Under the pieces are notes generated by a model. That model saw nothing but the letters and a program-made list of their open reading frames with translations. It had not been told where the DNA came from and made no database searches. A DNA stretch of 63,040 bases, filler included, from Lenisia limosa (Eukaryota; Protista; Breviatea), in assembly GCA_001655205.1 (NCBI GenBank). It is 8 parts of 8 records of this genome, joined end to end, with 100 filler letters (N's around TTAATTAATTAA, not from the genome) between each part and the next. Parts side by side here need not be neighbours in the genome. Positions count along the whole stretch, not along the records: positions 30,969 to 38,066 come from LPNZ01009677.1; 7 more parts are not named here. One strand, written 5' to 3'. Both the position numbers and the translations under genes were made by a program. Positions 29,801-38,253 of this stretch are shown here, in pieces (position 1 is the first letter of the stretch; each line of letters opens with the position of its first letter).

Positions 29801-31200
29801 ACATTATGATTCTCATCTGTTGACTGATAACCCCGACCGCATCACTATCACCACCGTAATTACTGCCAATAGCCCTTGGCCCACTTTTCTTCCCTTTGAC
29901 TCAACTGAAGCGATAAGGCAGTCTCTGGAGAAAGTAAAATGGAGCAAATCGCAACAGGAAGCAATATTTCTCCCTTCACTCTATTTTTTTTTTGAAATAT
30001 AATTGTTTGTTCAGAAATGGTGACAATTTACAGTAATTCTTTCCTTCATCTTTGCTCACTAAATATCAACAGAAAGCTATGGAGAGAACCAAAAAATGTC
30101 AAAAACAAGTAAACAATACAGATCTGTATTTATCACCACACTAAGAAAGACTGATAAGCGTGGAGGAATCATCCGGGCCACTCACCTGCAGTACCACGCG
30201 TCAGCATAGAAGTGCACTGCCTCTCTGTCACATTTCTTACTGATACACGAGCGCATTGAGCCCACTGCCAAAGTCAAATGCTGCATTCAAAATGTTCTTT
30301 GCTAATATATGCTCTTTTGGTGTGATTAAAAAGGACAAACTTGGGTTCATGAGAATGAGCGGATAGAAGTGGCAGAGTGTGAGATTTGNNNNNNNNNNNN
30401 NNNNNNNNNNNNNNNNNNNNNNNNNNNNNNNNNNNNNNNNNNNNNNNNNNNNNNNNNNNNNNNNNNNNNNNNNNNNNNNNNNNNNNNNNNNNNNNNNNNN
30501 NNNNNNNNNNNNNNNNNNNNNNNNNCATTTAGATAACAAGCAGAAACCCACTACACGGGGAAATGTGAAAAACCAAAGACTACTAAAGCCTTCCTTCACC
30601 TCCTTCCGCTAGTTAAAAATACAATTATCTATAAACGCCATTCTGGATGACAAAGACATGGAATTGCGACTACCTCGACCAACCTTCCAATACTGACGAC
30701 AACTTTCTTACACTCACACACAAGCAGGCTTTCTCTTGGCTTTCTGATTTTTCTAATAATAAACTGTTGAACTCTTTTTCGCTATCTCAGGTCAATCGTC
30801 AATCTCAGGGTTTTGTCTCTGGAATATTTCAGGATAATTTTCGCAATATTTTCTCGATTTTTTAAGAANNNNNNNNNNNNNNNNNNNNNNNNNNNNNNNN
30901 NNNNNNNNNNNNTTAATTAATTAANNNNNNNNNNNNNNNNNNNNNNNNNNNNNNNNNNNNNNNNNNNNCTTCACCACTTCTGACGGAAACAGCATTCGAT
31001 GGCTCTTCGGCTGGGAATCCAATATCTTCACACCTTTGTAGGGAAACTGATCATCGAAGCCGTTGACAAATGACCATTCTTTAGGCGGTCCTGGGGGGGA
31101 TGAAAAACTCCATGTTAATAGACACATAGAATATACGATTTTCATCCATATTGATTCGGCCATCAACACACCTGTCATTTCGACAACTTCAGTATGAACT
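26900..31200 (-). CDS. Multi-exon gene of unknown function (boundaries approximate; may be more than one gene)
   Basis: Open minus-strand exons with GT-AG ends, e.g. GPPKEWSFVNGFDDQFPYKGVKILD (~31090-31020), NAAFDFGSGLNALVY, EAVHFYADAWYCR, GPFFTKACEDLGIPFFTVP...VFPPFLESD (29176-29030), EIRSNSSDYFNCDLCYACQ (~27155-27097). Confidence 0.45.
30913..30924. other. Artificial six-frame stop linker TTAATTAATTAA (also 38111, 51752, 54214, 56301, 57819, 61562)
   Basis: An identical 12-mer centred in ~100-nt N blocks. This is an assembly gap marker, not biology. Confidence 0.95.
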
Positions 31201-31948
31201 TTATCACCACGTCGTTGTTATACTAAGATGTCAGGGAATCTGTGTTTACAAAGTACCGAACAACAAGTGAGGCACAATACAAAACAATTCAATTTATACA
31301 ACGTTTAACCCACCTAGGGTATTAAATATAAACAAGTTTAATTGTAAACCCCACCGAGAAAGTGCCAAAAACTAAAATAAGATTACAATGAACCTGACAG
31401 CTGCCAAATGAATCCTGTGTTTTCCTCCAGTGATGCCAATTATTCAGCAATTCAGTCGTGTGTTGTGACGACCCGCCTACTACCCCTGCGCTACGTGGAT
31501 ATTATGTGTATATTATTAGAGACAACAACAATATTGAAAATGCTGTGTGGTTTTGTGGCTGATGTGCAACGAGGAGATCGTTATATACATCGGAAGCGAC
31601 GGAAGGTTCAGTTCAGTTGTTAAGGAAAGAAAATAGTTGACAGTTGGTTTCATTGTATTTGTATTGAAGAGCTCTCTCATAGATTAATTATATTTTTTAG
31701 ATTGTGTGCCAATTGTGCAGAGAATCACTACCCCCCGCCCACCCCGAATTAGCACACTAAACGGAAGAAACGGAACAACAAAAACCCCTTCATTGGAGAA
31801 TTGAGGAACTGGGTATTATTTTCACTTTGTAAACCACTCCAATTTACATTGTGGTAAAAGCAAACTGAACAAAGTAATTATCTTTGGTTGGATACCTTTT
31901 TTCCCTTACCCCCTAGTCTTTACGCCATCCTCCTGCTGCCCATCAGCC

Positions 31949-34900
31949 ATGCCTCCCAAAAAAGCAAAACGTTTGTTGGACCTTTATCTTTTGTTGGCTA
32001 TTGGATGGACCGTATGGGTTTGATTTGTGCTGGATTTTTTGACAGTTATCATCAATATATCTTTTAAATCTGATGTTGGTCAGACGAAAAATACACTATG
32101 TATATTTGACTGCCACCTTTAGCTCCTGTGACACCAAAAGCAGCGCCTAAAACAACACCAAAGGCCAAAACGCCCATCCAATATGATGAGGATGGGAACA
32201 GAATTGCCAGGAGCACTGGTAAAATTGATCGAAGGTAATCGACTTTATCATTTATCAATGCTCTCTTTTGGTAGAATGCTGGCATTTATTCAACATTTAT
32301 GTAGAAATTAGAACAAATAATTGAGTAGAAATGACGTCACACATATCATCATATTATATTACTCTTAAGGCTGGTTTCATAAATTTGTATCTTCTAACTT
32401 TACAGAACAGTTGCAGGCAGAGCAGAGAAAGAAGCTGAACGCAGTATGTGTGTTTATTCAAAATCAACAGGCACACATATCCTCAGCATTCAAACAAATA
32501 CAATAGCAACCATCACATTGAATCTTGAAGTTGTGGTATGTCCCCAATAATGCGGAGTTTGTTTCAATTCATATCCTGAAGGCAGGTTAGATCTTTTGAA
32601 ATTCAAGAAAATCCAATTTGGCTTATTTAATCTAACACTATTATAGGAGCAGCCTCCCAGCCTGTAACACCCATGAGACAATCAGTGCCATCTTATCATA
32701 GTCCTCCGCCACCTTCGTCGCCGCCAACATACGCAAGCCCAGTGGGGGGGGGGNNNNNNNNNNNNNNNNNNNNNNNNNNNNNNNNNNNNNNNNNNNNNNN
32801 NNNNNNNNNNNNNNNNNNNNNNNNNNNNNNNNNNNNNNGCATAAACTACAGGTAGTATTTACAATTATATGCATAAAATATGAAGTGCCACTCGAAACGT
32901 TGTGGCAGTAAAATTATTATGATATTCGGTACTATCATCATTTGCATTTGAACATAACTGTCCACAATGTTTCAACCACCACATCATTTTGCCATACACC
33001 AATTTAGCCTTTTCTTTTACCTTCTAATCCCATATAGCCCTCGCCACCTCCCACAGTCACCCAGTCCAAAATGCTTCCAAGATATGAAACTCCCTCAAGG
33101 TGGTGGGTTATTGTACAGTGGCTGGGCTAAGTCTTGCCCTTTTCCTTGGGAAATCATATGGCAAATCGGTCAAGACTTATCCCGGTCACCTGTATATGTT
33201 GCCATAAGTGGTTTCCGGTCTTTAACATGAAAACAAAAAAATACTGATGCTTATCCGTTTCAACTTGAAGAAGCCTTGGAGTTAGGGCTTCACTTCGGGT
33301 CGAAAAAAGTCAGAATTTCTCGATAAATCCTCGAAAACTATCTATACTTTACCGGTCTTTCTAACCGAAAGTGAAGCCCTACTTGTCATCCTTACTTTAC
33401 GCCTTGTAGTTCACATGTACCGTCATACTCAGTGCCTTCTGGAGGACAGGCAAGCGGAAGAGGTAAGGGAGCAATAATCCCGGATTATCGAACATTACTA
33501 TCTTTATAGTACAGTCCCTCAATCTGCTATTCTTAACAGTTGCAGCTGGGGGCTCCAATGCCCGTGAAGAAAGACTTCGAGTAGAGGAGGAAAAAATGCG
33601 CGCTTTGAGCCTCAAAGAAAGTAGGTTATTCTGGCGGTTTAAAATATAAATAATGACCCTTTTCATTGAACTATTTTTCTTTTGGTTTATATTGTTCAGA
33701 AAAGGAAAGAGAAGAAAAGGAAGCGAAGAAAGAGAAAGCAGTGCAGTTGGTGAAGGAGAGAAGGATAAAGGCTAAAGAGGCTGTCACTAACCGAATGCTC
33801 GCACTCGAGGAGCAAGGTGGGTCATATTTGTGATTTATCATTTCATATTATATTTTGTGGAGATTGGGGAATATTAATATTCAGATATTGTGAGAGGGAG
33901 AACTAATTTGGATTTCCAACGATTATTCTCTTAACATTGGAATGTAGTCACATAACAAATAACTGTAGTTGGTTCTTTTCACCATATAATAGCGAAAAGC
34001 AAAAGTCCCAGCCCTGGCCCCAAGTTGAAAGACGGCGGGAGGAAGCGAGACGGCACTCCTGATGAGCGGAAGGTTTGAATGATACACGTGTTTTCGGAAA
34101 ACAATTATTTTATATTTTTTCGACTTGATGATTTTTACCATTTCAGACATTGCAAAAAGAAGACACATGGAAGTTGGAGTGGTGAATGTTAAACAAATCT
34201 AATTCTTTAGCACAATTATTATTCAAACCATTCAATATTAAAAACGCAACACTTTTGCTGCGTTATTTTTTAATGATGGGTGTCTCAACCTCAACTGGTG
34301 TTTGTTGGAAACTTTTTTTGTTTGGAGCCAGAAAACATAGAAATTTATATGACTTCTCTAACAACTAGGGTTCATGAAGAACGATGTGAATGGATCACAC
34401 ACGAGGTAGTGGAAGACTTGAAGAAAGAGGTAGGTAATGCTAAATGTCAACAAACTCCACATAGGCAGTGTTTAATAAAAGATGATTTCCAATTCAATTT
34501 TGTGATGAGTAACGATGATAACACCATCTTGTATACATAATAAAGAAACCAATAGCTGAGTGTTAAGCTTTTTTTTTTTAATATACTAATGTGAATCCTA
34601 TCATTTGAAATACCAGTATCATGTTGGATGCACGTCATACATTTCATACCCCCAGGGCTATAAGCTGCGTTTTGAAAGGCAAAAGGAAGTTACGTACAAT
34701 AACAATGGCAAACGACTTGATATCAAAATCATTGAAGAGAGAAAAGGGGGAAAGTTGGAGGGATCTTCTTGTGTGTTTCTACTTCCAGAGCTAACTAGTA
34801 AAATTTTTTTTGATTTGTTATCGTAATGCGTTTAGAGGTATTGTAGTAGATGCCAAGCACTACCGTTCAAACCCAATGGATAGGCAACAGGTCGATTCAA

Positions 34901-36824
34901 CCCTGGAATATAAAGTGGGTGTGAAGTTTATTTTTATAAGTGTATTATCTTTTTATAACTTTAATGCGTAGGTGAAAGGCAAATGCAGCTCGGCCATCAT
35001 TGTCAGGTCTTCAACAACAAATGTTTGTTATAGCTGTTATTTTATTTTATTGTGTACTGTTTTTTTTCAAAAAAAAAATATTTCAAACATAATATATCAT
35101 ATAATCATCTGAGTGTTGTGACCTGATTATATTCAATATTTAGGATATGCTTTCACGGGGCGGATTATCACGCTGTGTTTCTGACCGTTCAGACTCGGGA
35201 TTCAGTTGAGAAATACGCGCTAAACAAGGGGGTCGTACTTTGCTTCACAAAGGTGGATAAGCCGCAATTATACTGATTATTGTTTTCAAATAAATACAGT
35301 AACATATTAGAACTATGGTTCCGTTTTGAAGGACGAAATTCGCAAACTATTCAGGAAAGAAGAAAATGAGGTTGGTGGATTCCGGCTTGTTCATTGTATG
35401 AGATATGATCATTTTGAAATTTTTAATTTGACATATTTTTTTAATAAACGTATTCGACCACAATCCTCATAAAAGTGATTTTCTTCAAGGAAAATTGGGA
35501 TTATATTTGCTAGCAGAAGAAACAATATGTTCTTTCATACTCATACACCAGAACATTTCAATATTGAGTGTGTAATTTGTTTCCTAATTCACACGGCTTA
35601 ATTTCAGCAGCCATTCTGGGGTGACGCAAGTGTTCGAGAGGATTCACAGACCAAATCCCTGGGTAACACAGAATACACAAAAGACGAAATGCGATTCATT
35701 TTCGGACAGTCACCGAGTCTGCCATCGTCATCTCTCCGATCGCAGTCCCCTCCAGCACCTTCAAGAATATCACCACCAACCTATCAGGAAGTTAGTGAGG
35801 CGCGTCATCACATAATATTGGAGCTGTCTATCCATTCCAAAACCACCTAATTTTATGATATGCATATACTATTTTAACAAATAAAACTCTAGAGCACTCC
35901 TTCTCAAAGAAGTAATGAACAAATTGAAGAGCAGGTAGGCGTTTAAGAGACATACTATACATGTACCTGGTCAAGCAAATATTAAAGGTTTACTTGCCTA
36001 ATGTTGTCATGATTTTATTTGGGTGAATTCTAAACTATGGCACACACCTCTTATTTGGGCGATTAAATTATCAAATATTAGTAAAAAAACAGTATTGAAA
36101 AAAACAAATATTTAAAAGTAATTATCCCCCTTTTTTTTGAATATTCGGAGTCTAAATATAATATTTGGGAAAGAATTAAATATTTTATTTGATAATTTTA
36201 TCGCCTTCTTGTTATTTTTGTTACAAGGTATCATCATTCACAATGACAGGTACAACAAATCATTGCTCAGATTTACTCCCATTATGATGACGTGAGTGGT
36301 GATGCTGTCCTATTTATTGGAGTTTTTGATAATGCTGTTATGTTTTCGTTTTAAATCCACTAATCCATTCAGATGGACAAACCACATGTAAGCGAGGCAG
36401 TCGCCAAAGGAGAGGTTATCTTTCTGATCTCATTGGGGAAAGACGTTAATCCCAATTCAGGTGTTAATCTGAAATTCATTTTTTAGCTTGCTGAAGAGGC
36501 GCGCTTCCTCATAGGGGAGTCCCTTAACCTTCTTGATTACCTTGCGGTAGGGCAATCCCATTATGAGAGCAAAATAATGTAATGGTTTCTGTTCGTTCTG
36601 TTTGATNNNNNNNNNNNNNNNNNNNNNNNNNNNNNNNNNNNNNNNNNNNNNNNNNNNNNNNNNNNNNNNNNNNNNNNNNNNNNNNNNNNNNNNNNNNNNN
36701 NNNNNNNNNNNNNNNNNNNNNNNNNNNNNNNNNNNNNNNNNNNNNNNNNNNTTTGTAGATGCTCACGAACGATCAGGCATTTTTCTGTTTTGAGAGAGTT
36801 TCTTTTCCATTTCATTTAGCTTGA
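31949..36824 (+). CDS. Spliced protein with Pro-rich/coiled-coil N-terminus and an Mrr-type PD-(D/E)xK nuclease-like domain
   Basis: Starts MPPKKAK. Phase-consistent exons give VHEERCEWITHEVVEDLKKE|GYKLRFERQKEVTYNNNGKRLDIKIIEERKGG(K)|GIVVDAKHYRSNPMDRQQVDSTLEYK|VKGKCSSAIIVRSSTTN|TRDSVEKYALNKGVVLCFTK|NYGSVLKDEIRKLF (34366-35360). The 3' end is uncertain. Confidence 0.7.
33285..33379. mobile_element. MITE family A, TIR type 1, full length
   Basis: TA|GGGCTTCACTTCGGGTCGAAAAAA...TCGATAAATCCTCGAAAACTA...AACCGAAAGTGAAGCCC|TA. Terminal inverted repeats with TA on both sides; intronic. Confidence 0.85.
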
Positions 36825-36952
36825 AGAAAAAGTGGAGAAACGTTTTTTTAAAGGGGAGAGGATAAATGGGTGAAGGAATATCCAGATGCGACAGATTCAA
36901 CCCCTTAGAACTCAATAATAAATGAAAACCATGAATCACAACACCCTTGCCC

Positions 36953-37624
36953 TTAGAAGTCTTTAGTCATAGGGGGGGTGTCGTCACTGGGGAGGAAGTC
37001 CAGGCTGAAAGTGGCTACGGGTGAGGAGGTAGCGGGGTTTGAGGCGAAGATCTTCGCAATGCCTAATGTGATAAGATAAAGTCATCACACAACATCCGTC
37101 TAGTCCCATCACCAAATCAGCATTGATAAATGTTCAATGAAAAGAATTGGAATTATAAAAATAATCATTTAAGTCAGTAAACTATCGTTCAAAGTAGAAC
37201 CTCAGGTACCTAAAAAAAACCCCCAAGTAGCCCTCCTACCAGCCTTGAGGTCGGTGACGATGGTGGTGAAGGTCTCGAGATAATCGGGGAATTTTCCGTT
37301 GCGGTAAACGGGGAACGTGGGGTTCTGTGTGTGTTAAGCGAATGTTGGGTTTTAAAGGGAAATTGTGTTGCAAAATCAAAAAACGTTCTTCATCTGCATT
37401 TCTTTCGTTTTACNNNNNNNNNNNNNNNNNNNNNNNNNNNNNNNNNNNNNNNNNNNNNNNNNNNNNNNNNNNNNNNNNNNNNNNNNNNNNNNNNNNNNNN
37501 NNNNNNNNNNNNNNNNNNNNNNNNNNNNNNNNNNNNNNNNNNNNNNNNNNNNNNNNNNNNNNNNNNNNNNNNNNCGGATTTCAGCCTCATCCTTGGGCTC
37601 GTGAGGGAGTTCTTCAAAGCGACG
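36953..37624 (-). CDS. C-terminal exons of a peptidase C45 / AAT (tan-like) Ntn-hydrolase family protein (5' part lost in gaps)
   Basis: RRFEELPHEPKDEAEI..|NPTFPVYRNGKFPDYLETFTTIVTDLKA|GIAKIFASNPATSSPVATFSLDFLPSDDTPPMTKDF*. Resembles the C45 C-terminal YP(I/V)YR...T..T...DL.......NP pattern. Confidence 0.6.
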
Positions 37625-37719
37625 CTGCGCAGTTAATAAGATTAAATCTGGCCCAAAAACTGAAAGAAGCAAGTTTTTAGTTTTTTTAACCCTTTCTCGA
37701 ACAATGAAAAATAACACTC

Positions 37720-37795
37720 TTTGTGATTAGAAGATGATTCTTGGAGTTGGAGGTGATTTGTGATTAGAAGATGATTCTTGGAGTTGGAGGTGATT
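37720..37795. repeat. 37-bp tandem duplication
   Basis: TTTGTGATTAGAAGATGATTCTTGGAGTTGGAGGTGA, 2 copies. Confidence 0.9.
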
Positions 37796-38253
37796 AAGCA
37801 GCTTGTGCTTCTTCTTTTAAACAGAATTATCCAATACCCCCCCCCCCNNNNNNNNNNNNNNNNNNNNNNNNNNNNNNNNNNNNNNNNNNNNNNNNNNNNN
37901 NNNNNNNNNNNNNNNNNNNNNTTGAGGCGGCGGTACTGAAAAGTTACATCTCAAATGATAATAGCAATTTCAAACAACAAAAAAGGGATGTAAAACATAT
38001 TCGTTTGTTTTCAAAAAACTGAAAACAAAATACTTCATAATACAACAGAACCTATTCAAAACAAATNNNNNNNNNNNNNNNNNNNNNNNNNNNNNNNNNN
38101 NNNNNNNNNNTTAATTAATTAANNNNNNNNNNNNNNNNNNNNNNNNNNNNNNNNNNNNNNNNNNNNTTTATATTGTAAAAACTGTGTTAAATGGAGATCG
38201 GCCACACACTCGCAAAGAAGAGGAATCCATTACACCATAGCAAGTAGCCCAGT

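Follow-up and report, generated by a model that had tools for sequence, protein, structure and literature searches.

A transcribed, intron-rich gene of the breviate Lenisia limosa with a predicted Mrr-type nuclease domain

Mrr-type restriction-endonuclease-fold domains are defence enzymes of bacteria and archaea, and to our knowledge none of the eukaryotic domains of this type has been functionally studied. Our literature search likewise yielded no functional work on Mrr-type nucleases of eukaryotes, besides a sceptical note on the MutS1 protein of Cyanophora paradoxa. Here we describe a gene of the breviate Lenisia limosa whose protein carries a predicted domain of this kind. The gene lies on the plus strand at positions 31949-36584 of the window, by which we mean the whole stretch of 63,040 nucleotides analysed, joined from eight parts of assembly GCA_001655205.1. 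All positions count along this window, and the part that holds the gene (genome sequence at 30969-38066, record LPNZ01009677.1) contains four N gaps. With moderate confidence, we read the locus as a gene that is resident in, and transcribed by, an intron-rich eukaryote and encodes a protein of ~487 amino acids (aa) with an Mrr-type Mg2+-dependent DNA endonuclease.

In the superfamily to which these enzymes belong, the active site follows the motif D...(Q/E)xK, in its broader form (D/E)...(D/E/Q)xK, with the Asp at strand 2 and the xK at strand 3, and MspJI is inactivated by D334A and by Q355A (PMC2938202). For the Mrr family, a passage of PMC12292046 that cites Smith et al. 2009 names the two Asp of motif II and the Lys of motif III as essential. 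A published survey recorded the Mrr_cat/DUF2034 group in Bacteria, Archaea and phages as well as in eukaryotes other than plants, with no observable horizontal gene transfer and an unresolved phylogeny (PMC3424549). In Cyanophora, a weak Mrr_cat-like domain forms the C-terminal extension of the nucleus-encoded MutS1; it has Arg for the catalytic Lys and an altered Asp spacing, and its authors regard it as probably inactive (PMC12292046).

Homology to Mrr_cat and the active site

Exons 11-16 of the Lenisia gene (aa ~228-345) encode what profile comparisons identify as a PD-(D/E)xK nuclease domain homologous to Mrr_cat (PF04471). As the starting point for a family profile, the catalytic domain of EcoKMrr from E. 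coli K-12 was compared with plasmids by tblastn, which gave matches down to 26% identity, nearly all of them annotated 'restriction endonuclease'. We picked 20 plasmid-encoded domains from Proteobacteria, Firmicutes, Actinobacteria, Cyanobacteria and Haloarchaea, and built a hidden Markov model (HMM) from these and three EcoKMrr-type sequences, giving 23 aligned Mrr-type domains. Against the 487-aa protein, this HMM found a single domain at aa 238-321 with 23.6 bits. Against aa 219-363 the score was 27.8 bits, compared with 9.3 bits for the best of 5000 shuffles, and the reversed domain sequence was not among the eight best rows. Comparison of the single domain sequence with the 23-domain alignment by hhalign gave a probability of 92.6% (E 4.5e-7, 93 columns). 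In a Pfam scan of a 59-residue piece from exons 12 and 13, Mrr_cat (PF04471) came out on top (E 0.0038, 17.8 bits, profile positions 23-67 of 115), with no other nuclease family listed. A score of 17.8 out of the 21 bits set for a whole protein, reached with half a domain, is consistent with the local profile result. Thus the assignment to Mrr_cat is supported at the profile level by two independent models, and the domain resembling Mrr or type IV enzymes that a sequence-only reading of this DNA had proposed is borne out by all three comparisons.

Comparisons of lower power gave less. An EcoKMrr word search and a scan of genome contigs yielded close EcoKMrr orthologues only, and the narrow enterobacterial Mrr profile built on them ranked the real domain 10th of 2001 with the same motifs aligned, a suggestive and not a significant result. 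Pairwise BLAST of the domain with EcoKMrr stayed at noise level, and neither exon 12 nor exon 13 matched a PDB sequence. Pfam scans of each exon singly, a low-power setting, returned no meaningful family and one chance match, to Sas-5 implico. Two other models listed for the 59-residue piece were set aside: PF21518 (Sas-5-like implico; E 0.087, 12.9 bits against a cut-off of 27) is at chance level, and panD of NCBIfam (E 0.065, 13.2 bits against a cut-off of 106) is a weak chance match. PADLOC gave no match to this piece.

The alignment places the elements of the family in order along the exons, all on the plus strand. Exon 11 (34369-34429, aa 227-247), in which the profile alignment starts, encodes the predicted nuclease helix 1 (..CEWITHEVVEDLKKE); it is bounded by the RNA joints 34172>34369 and 34427>34654. 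Exon 12 (34656-34753, aa 248-280) carries the GY turn (GY at aa 248-249, as in the family), strands 1 and 2 and motif II (GKRLD), and matches the RNA with no mismatches. Within it, Asp269 (codon GAT, 34719-34721) aligns with the second Asp of DGGxD, which is found in all 23 family sequences. Exon 13 (34836-34914, aa 280-306), again without mismatches to the RNA, holds strand 3 followed by a helix. Its D285-A-K287-H-Y corresponds to the (Q/E)-x-K-R-(Y/W) of the family, so that in this motif III (codons GAT GCC AAG, 34849-34857) the Lys is the invariant Lys and the Asp takes the Q/E position; the helix MDRQQVD aligns with VGRP..V. Exon 14 (34972-35022, aa 307-323) encodes strand 4, where SAIIVRSS aligns with GVFVTTS. 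Exon 15 (35193-35252, aa 324-343) supplies a helix and the last strand (SVEKYA..VVLCF, equivalent to A..FA...I.L), with SVEKYA at the A..(Y/F)A helix and VVL at the final I.L strand. Exon 16 (35311-35370, aa 344-363) adds a post-domain helix; its RNA piece spans 35309-35368, with a 2-nucleotide (nt) ambiguity of the cut. The positions of Asp269 on strand 2 and of Asp285-x-Lys287 on strand 3 are taken from the alignment.

The metal-binding motif (D/E)...(D/E/Q)xK is thus present as Asp269...Asp285-Ala-Lys287, with the D variant at the middle residue, and the aligned site reads as a classical PD-(D/E)xK triad, D269...D285-A-K287, rather than the Mrr-type D...QxK. The sequence-only reading had listed the Mrr motifs as present in order; its D...DxK, the following helix, the S/T strand and the A..YA ending all aligned with the family. 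One qualification concerns motif II, where only the second of the two Asp of Mrr enzymes is present. Among the 23 domains, the one from Halomarina sp. BCD28 (archaeal plasmid, 'restriction endonuclease') has the same active-site variant, G-x-x-x-D with E-V-K, in the form G-R-A-I-D, and all Q-x-K members keep both Asp of motif II. This single case hints that an acidic residue at the Q/E position may compensate for the lost Asp, and catalytic competence of the Lenisia domain is plausible. In contrast to the Lenisia domain, the Halomarina domain is prokaryotic and sits within a protein of ~1000 aa. It is the second-best pairwise phmmer match to the Lenisia domain with 9.9 bits, which is noise level, and the similarity of the two is seen at the profile level only.

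Compared with the Mrr_cat domains of modification-dependent (type IV) restriction endonucleases (EcoKMrr, MspJI family), the Lenisia domain shows profile-level homology over ~90 residues. The order of elements is the same: a helix and GY, the D at strand 2, the xK at strand 3 followed by Y/W, a helix, a hydrophobic strand that closes with S/T and, last, the A..(Y/F)A helix; the conserved Asp and invariant Lys are common to both. In contrast to these enzymes, the Lenisia domain is eukaryotic, has five introns inside, and shows D-A-K for (Q/E)-x-K and Gly for the first Asp of DGGxD. What precedes the domain in the Lenisia protein is a disordered, basic tail plus a charged helix; an Mrr_N or winged-helix reader was not detected, and no restriction-modification genes adjoin the gene. 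Unlike the Cyanophora MutS1 extension, the Lenisia domain has Lys287 and a canonical D...DxK, and the partner domains of the two proteins are unrelated.

Within eukaryotes, a described group is DUF2034 (PF10356), which we take to be the fungal Rrg7 family. A scan of the 59-aa piece, half a domain, did not list PF10356 at E values up to 10, with HMMER filters that drop weak matches. The N-terminus of the Lenisia protein looks nuclear and basic, unlike a mitochondrial presequence. The eukaryotic Mrr_cat/DUF2034 domains are restriction-endonuclease-fold domains of uncharacterised function (PF10356; PMC3424549), as the Lenisia domain is predicted to be. Because this group has already been catalogued in eukaryotes (PMC3424549), the 'undescribed system' of the sequence-only reading was too strong a term: the gene is an uncharacterised member of a recorded domain group. 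What we report is a well-supported annotation rather than a novel type of system.

Splicing and transcription of the gene

The gene model was obtained by joining exon-sized open stretches with AG/GT borders. It comprises 21 exons on the plus strand, all joined at GT-AG introns; the single frame opens with an ATG at 31949, stays free of stops through 487 codons and closes with a TAA at 36582-36584. The 20 introns are each GT-AG and 57-315 nt long, and an open frame of 487 codons over 20 canonical junctions is not attributable to chance. Five of the introns interrupt the nuclease domain (exons 11-16). The G+C content is 46.9% in exons and 32.7% in introns, and 41.8% in the nuclease-domain exons compared with 48.9% in the remaining exons.

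To monitor the transcript, we used one study that supplies both a DNA run and a polyA RNA-Seq run. All sampled words of the stretch were present in the DNA run and 27% of them in the RNA run, as expected if exons alone are present in the latter. The RNA evidence consists of contigs of this study and informs on the presence and structure of the transcript; the comparison covered 32839-36606, and exons 1-3 are predicted. A single RNA contig of 1630 nt covers exons 5-21 with no mismatches. The GT..AG joints listed for it include 33097>33408, 33460>33544, 33620>33700 and 33814>33991, and further downstream 34070>34145, 34172>34369 and 34427>34654, with 14 further joints. The gene is therefore transcribed and spliced.

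Borders in the second half of the domain could be fixed from the contig together with read depth. The contig coordinates leave exactly 51+60 nt from exon 13 to exon 16, and over exons 10-21 the depth in every recomputed bin equals 33.1 x exon bases/126; bin 35233-35358, for example, has a depth of 17.9, equal to 68 exon bases. Together, the coordinates and bin depths settle where exons 14, 15 and 16 begin and end. The contig also corrected the predicted model in three places. Exon 10 ends at 34172, with the next in-frame donor at 34181 unused. Exon 16 starts at 35311 (acceptor 35309-10), seven codons earlier than with the acceptor at 35330-31. Exon 17 starts at 35611, where the distal AG of a NAGNAG acceptor is chosen. 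A micro-exon of 15 nt (36373-36387) with AG/GT borders was confirmed in the contig as well. At its loose end before 33038, the contig carries the same letters as the final 30 nt of exon 4, which places the N gap at 32754-32838 within intron 4.

These data substantiate the six phase-compatible exons that had been read from the DNA: they are exons 11-16, with AG/GT borders and one frame, and all the peptides quoted for them occur in the translation. The RNA check of splicing proposed at that time has now been made, and the 1630-nt contig follows the predicted joints with no mismatches apart from the three small corrections. At the 3' end the model is less firm. The RNA contig ends at 36541, short of an assembly gap that begins at 36607, and this makes the 3' end of the gene uncertain, a GT at 36547 being a possible donor into the gap. 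The encoded protein thus has ~487 aa, with an uncertain C-terminus.

Possible functions, alternatives and origin

Outside the domain, the protein is built from segments of strongly biased composition. Residues 1-134 are basic (pI 10.5) and Pro/Ser/Ala-rich, starting with PPKKAK and TPK repeats and including one PPTY; residues 135-192 are E/K/R/A/L-rich and helix-like; and residues 193-227 form a Lys-rich linker to the nuclease domain (residues 228-345). A short charged helix follows (residues 346-363), then a Ser/Pro/Gln-rich segment with a second PPTY (residues 364-440) and a short, acidic, hydrophobic-patterned end (residues 441-487). Pfam scans of the N- and C-terminal exons one by one, which have low power, found no family, and a narrow enterobacterial profile of the EcoKMrr N-terminal domain scored -0.2 bits against the protein; on these two results, no N-terminal reader domain of the Mrr type was detected.

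Such nucleases need a dimer or a higher oligomer for double-strand cleavage. If the protein is an Mg2+-dependent DNA endonuclease, as we favour, the Lys/Pro-rich tail, histone-H1-like in composition, could provide non-specific DNA targeting, and the same tail resembles a nuclear localisation signal. Its substrate could be foreign, modified, damaged or branched DNA. The long charged helix (aa ~135-192) might bring about the dimer or higher oligomer required for cutting both strands, and regulation or the binding of partners would fall to the Ser/Pro linker and the short C-terminus, which is acidic and helical. Transcript support, fixed exons, a canonical triad and a non-bacterial architecture make the gene a concrete candidate for a eukaryotic role, be it in DNA repair, in recombination or in guarding the cell against foreign or modified DNA. 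If its activity were modification-dependent, it would offer a eukaryotic parallel to type IV restriction. A more specific scenario is a nuclear, restriction-like nuclease of immunity or genome defence, in which the Mrr-type core, held on chromatin by the H1-like tail and oligomerised through the coiled coil, would cut foreign or aberrantly modified DNA of viral, transposon or symbiont origin. This scenario is speculative and, in our estimate, improbable; if true, type IV restriction would have a eukaryotic counterpart whose architecture is new and lacks a reader.

Several points weigh against our favoured reading. The first Asp of DGGxD is Gly here (motif II G-K-R-L-D), the helix-1 glutamate (FE in the family) is not alignable with confidence, and the Pfam half-domain score lies under the 21-bit cut-off for a whole protein. 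Searches of low power found no orthologues in which the catalytic residues might be kept under selection. One alternative is an Mrr-like fold that does not cut DNA and serves as a DNA- or protein-binding module of a structural or chromatin-associated protein. A non-cutting role has been suggested for the Mrr_cat-like extension of Cyanophora MutS1 (PMC12292046), and the residue replaced by Gly is one of the two motif II Asp that the quoted passage of that paper calls essential in Mrr enzymes. The unplaced helix-1 glutamate, the extended disordered and charged stretches on both sides of the domain, and the lack of orthologues that would show conservation would also fit such a module. However, the D...DxK triad is complete, the invariant Lys is retained, unlike in Cyanophora, and the lost Asp co-occurs with an acidic residue at the Q/E position, as in the archaeal domain from Halomarina (GRAID with EVK). 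We consider a non-cutting module unlikely, though by no means far-fetched.

An active nuclease might instead belong to a conflict system or a mobile element. Crinkler-type effectors carry restriction-endonuclease domains of the toxin/effector type, and the gene could be a recent acquisition of a bacterial or viral restriction-type gene or an effector of that sort, lineage-specific and fast evolving. Searches for relatives are compatible with this idea. Exon 12 (32 aa) gave no match at E<=0.001 among 1.84 billion cluster representatives, a tblastn search of exon 13 against plasmids and phages gave none at E<=10, and exon-containing stop-free stretches found no relatives among viral and metagenome contigs, where exact 8-residue peptides were required. 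The somewhat lower G+C of the domain exons (41.8% compared with 48.9%) points the same way. Nonetheless, these searches have low power, with a 32-aa query or exact 8-mer peptides; they detect close relatives only and are silent on distant eukaryotic homologues. Since the protein's own match is absent among the cluster representatives too, that blank gives no measure of rarity. In addition, a recent acquisition sits poorly with five spliceosomal introns in the domain and 20 in the gene, a low-complexity eukaryotic context and polyA expression. The gene showed neither a header domain nor a signal peptide nor transposon features, and the published survey saw no horizontal gene transfer in the Mrr_cat/DUF2034 group (PMC3424549). 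We regard this alternative as very improbable. Neither the five introns nor the G+C of the domain decides between ancient residence and transfer. The domestication, possible horizontal acquisition and part in genome defence or repair put forward in the sequence-only reading are neither favoured nor disfavoured by these data.

A chance resemblance, or membership of a PD-(D/E)xK family other than Mrr_cat, would fit the blank Pfam and PDB searches with single exons, the noise-level pairwise BLAST against EcoKMrr and the 59-aa Pfam match below its gathering cut-off, but it is largely refuted and scarcely credible given the 18-bit margin over 5000 shuffles, the hhalign E value of 4.5e-7, four separate motifs in consistent register, and Mrr_cat at the top of a Pfam scan that lists no other nuclease family. 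By the shuffle margin, hhalign and the motif register, D...DAK is also ruled out as a chance pattern.

Flanking exons, repeats and neighbouring sequence

Upstream of the domain, exons 1-4 encode the first part of the basic N-terminal segment. Exon 1 (31949-31970, aa 1-8) is predicted from the start codon with MPPKKAK, a GT donor and frame continuity. Exon 2 (32123-32234, aa 8-45), placed by its AG/GT borders and frame, encodes the TPK/KAK-rich basic part and has no Pfam match. For exon 3 (32406-32443, aa 45-58; predicted), the frame stays open with the acceptor at 32404-05 only, and the alternative at 32417 leads to stops. Exon 4 (32647-32741, aa 58-89), supported by AG/GT borders and the loose end of the RNA contig, is Pro/Ser-rich and contains the first PPTY. 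The N-terminal TPK/KAK repeats resemble histone H1 tails, possibly by chance given the composition.

Each of exons 5-10 is supported by the RNA contig. Exon 5 (33038-33099, aa 90-110) is a contig piece ending at joint 33097>33408, and exon 6 (33410-33462, aa 110-128) lies between this joint and 33460>33544. The charged E/K/R helix begins in exon 7 (33546-33620, aa 128-153; contig piece, joint 33620>33700) and continues as a coiled-coil candidate in exon 8 (33700-33816, aa 153-192; contig piece, joint 33814>33991), a segment with 26% E, 19% K and 12% R. Exon 9 (33993-34072, aa 192-218; contig piece, joint 34070>34145) encodes the basic linker (KSKSPSPGPK..RKRD), and exon 10 (34147-34172, aa 219-227) leaves at the GT..AG joint 34172>34369.

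Downstream of the domain, exon 17 (35611-35790, aa 364-423), an RNA contig piece with no Pfam match, encodes the Ser/Pro-rich linker with the second PPTY. At its acceptor, the NAGNAG (CAGCAG) at 35606-35611 would insert one Gln if the proximal AG were used; the RNA contig has the distal form. The two PPTY motifs, in exons 4 and 17 (32647-32741 and 35611-35790), are of the PPxY type and WW-domain-ligand-like, possibly by chance given the composition. Exon 18 (35893-35934, aa 424-437) has AG/GT borders with which the RNA depth (bin 35863-35988) and the record length agree, and the RNA joint departs from exon 19 (36250-36291, aa 438-451) at 36291. The letters of exon 20 (36373-36387; MDKPH), the AG/GT-bordered micro-exon, stand between the two sides of the RNA joint 36291>36487. 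Exon 21 (36487-36584) ends at the possible stop TAA at 36582-36584; RNA covers 36487-36541 only, and the C-terminus is uncertain.

Two introns hold repeats. In intron 5, an element of very high copy number at 33091-33342 reaches a summed contig depth of 10,000-50,000 in the DNA run, compared with ~35 elsewhere. Many contigs break within it at 33140, 33183-33190 and 33283-33285, and it contains a 22-nt inverted repeat (33118-33139 / 33168-33189); it looks like a repeat of the miniature inverted-repeat transposable element or short interspersed nuclear element type. Intron 18 contains a 20-nt inverted repeat (36058-36077 / 36186-36205) with 95% complementary arms 108 nt apart, which could represent the termini of a small element inserted there.

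Across 30969-38066, we saw neither transposon genes nor neighbours of the restriction-modification type, nor any RNA genes, and an Rfam scan was blank. On the minus strand, exon-like open stretches of neighbouring genes lie at 30969-31097, 36956-37081, 37205-37324 and 37577-37726, for which Pfam gave no match. Beyond the last of these, a near-exact direct duplication of ~35 nt (TGATTAGAAGATGATTCTTGGAGTTGGAGGTGATT..) was spotted by eye at 37731-37800.

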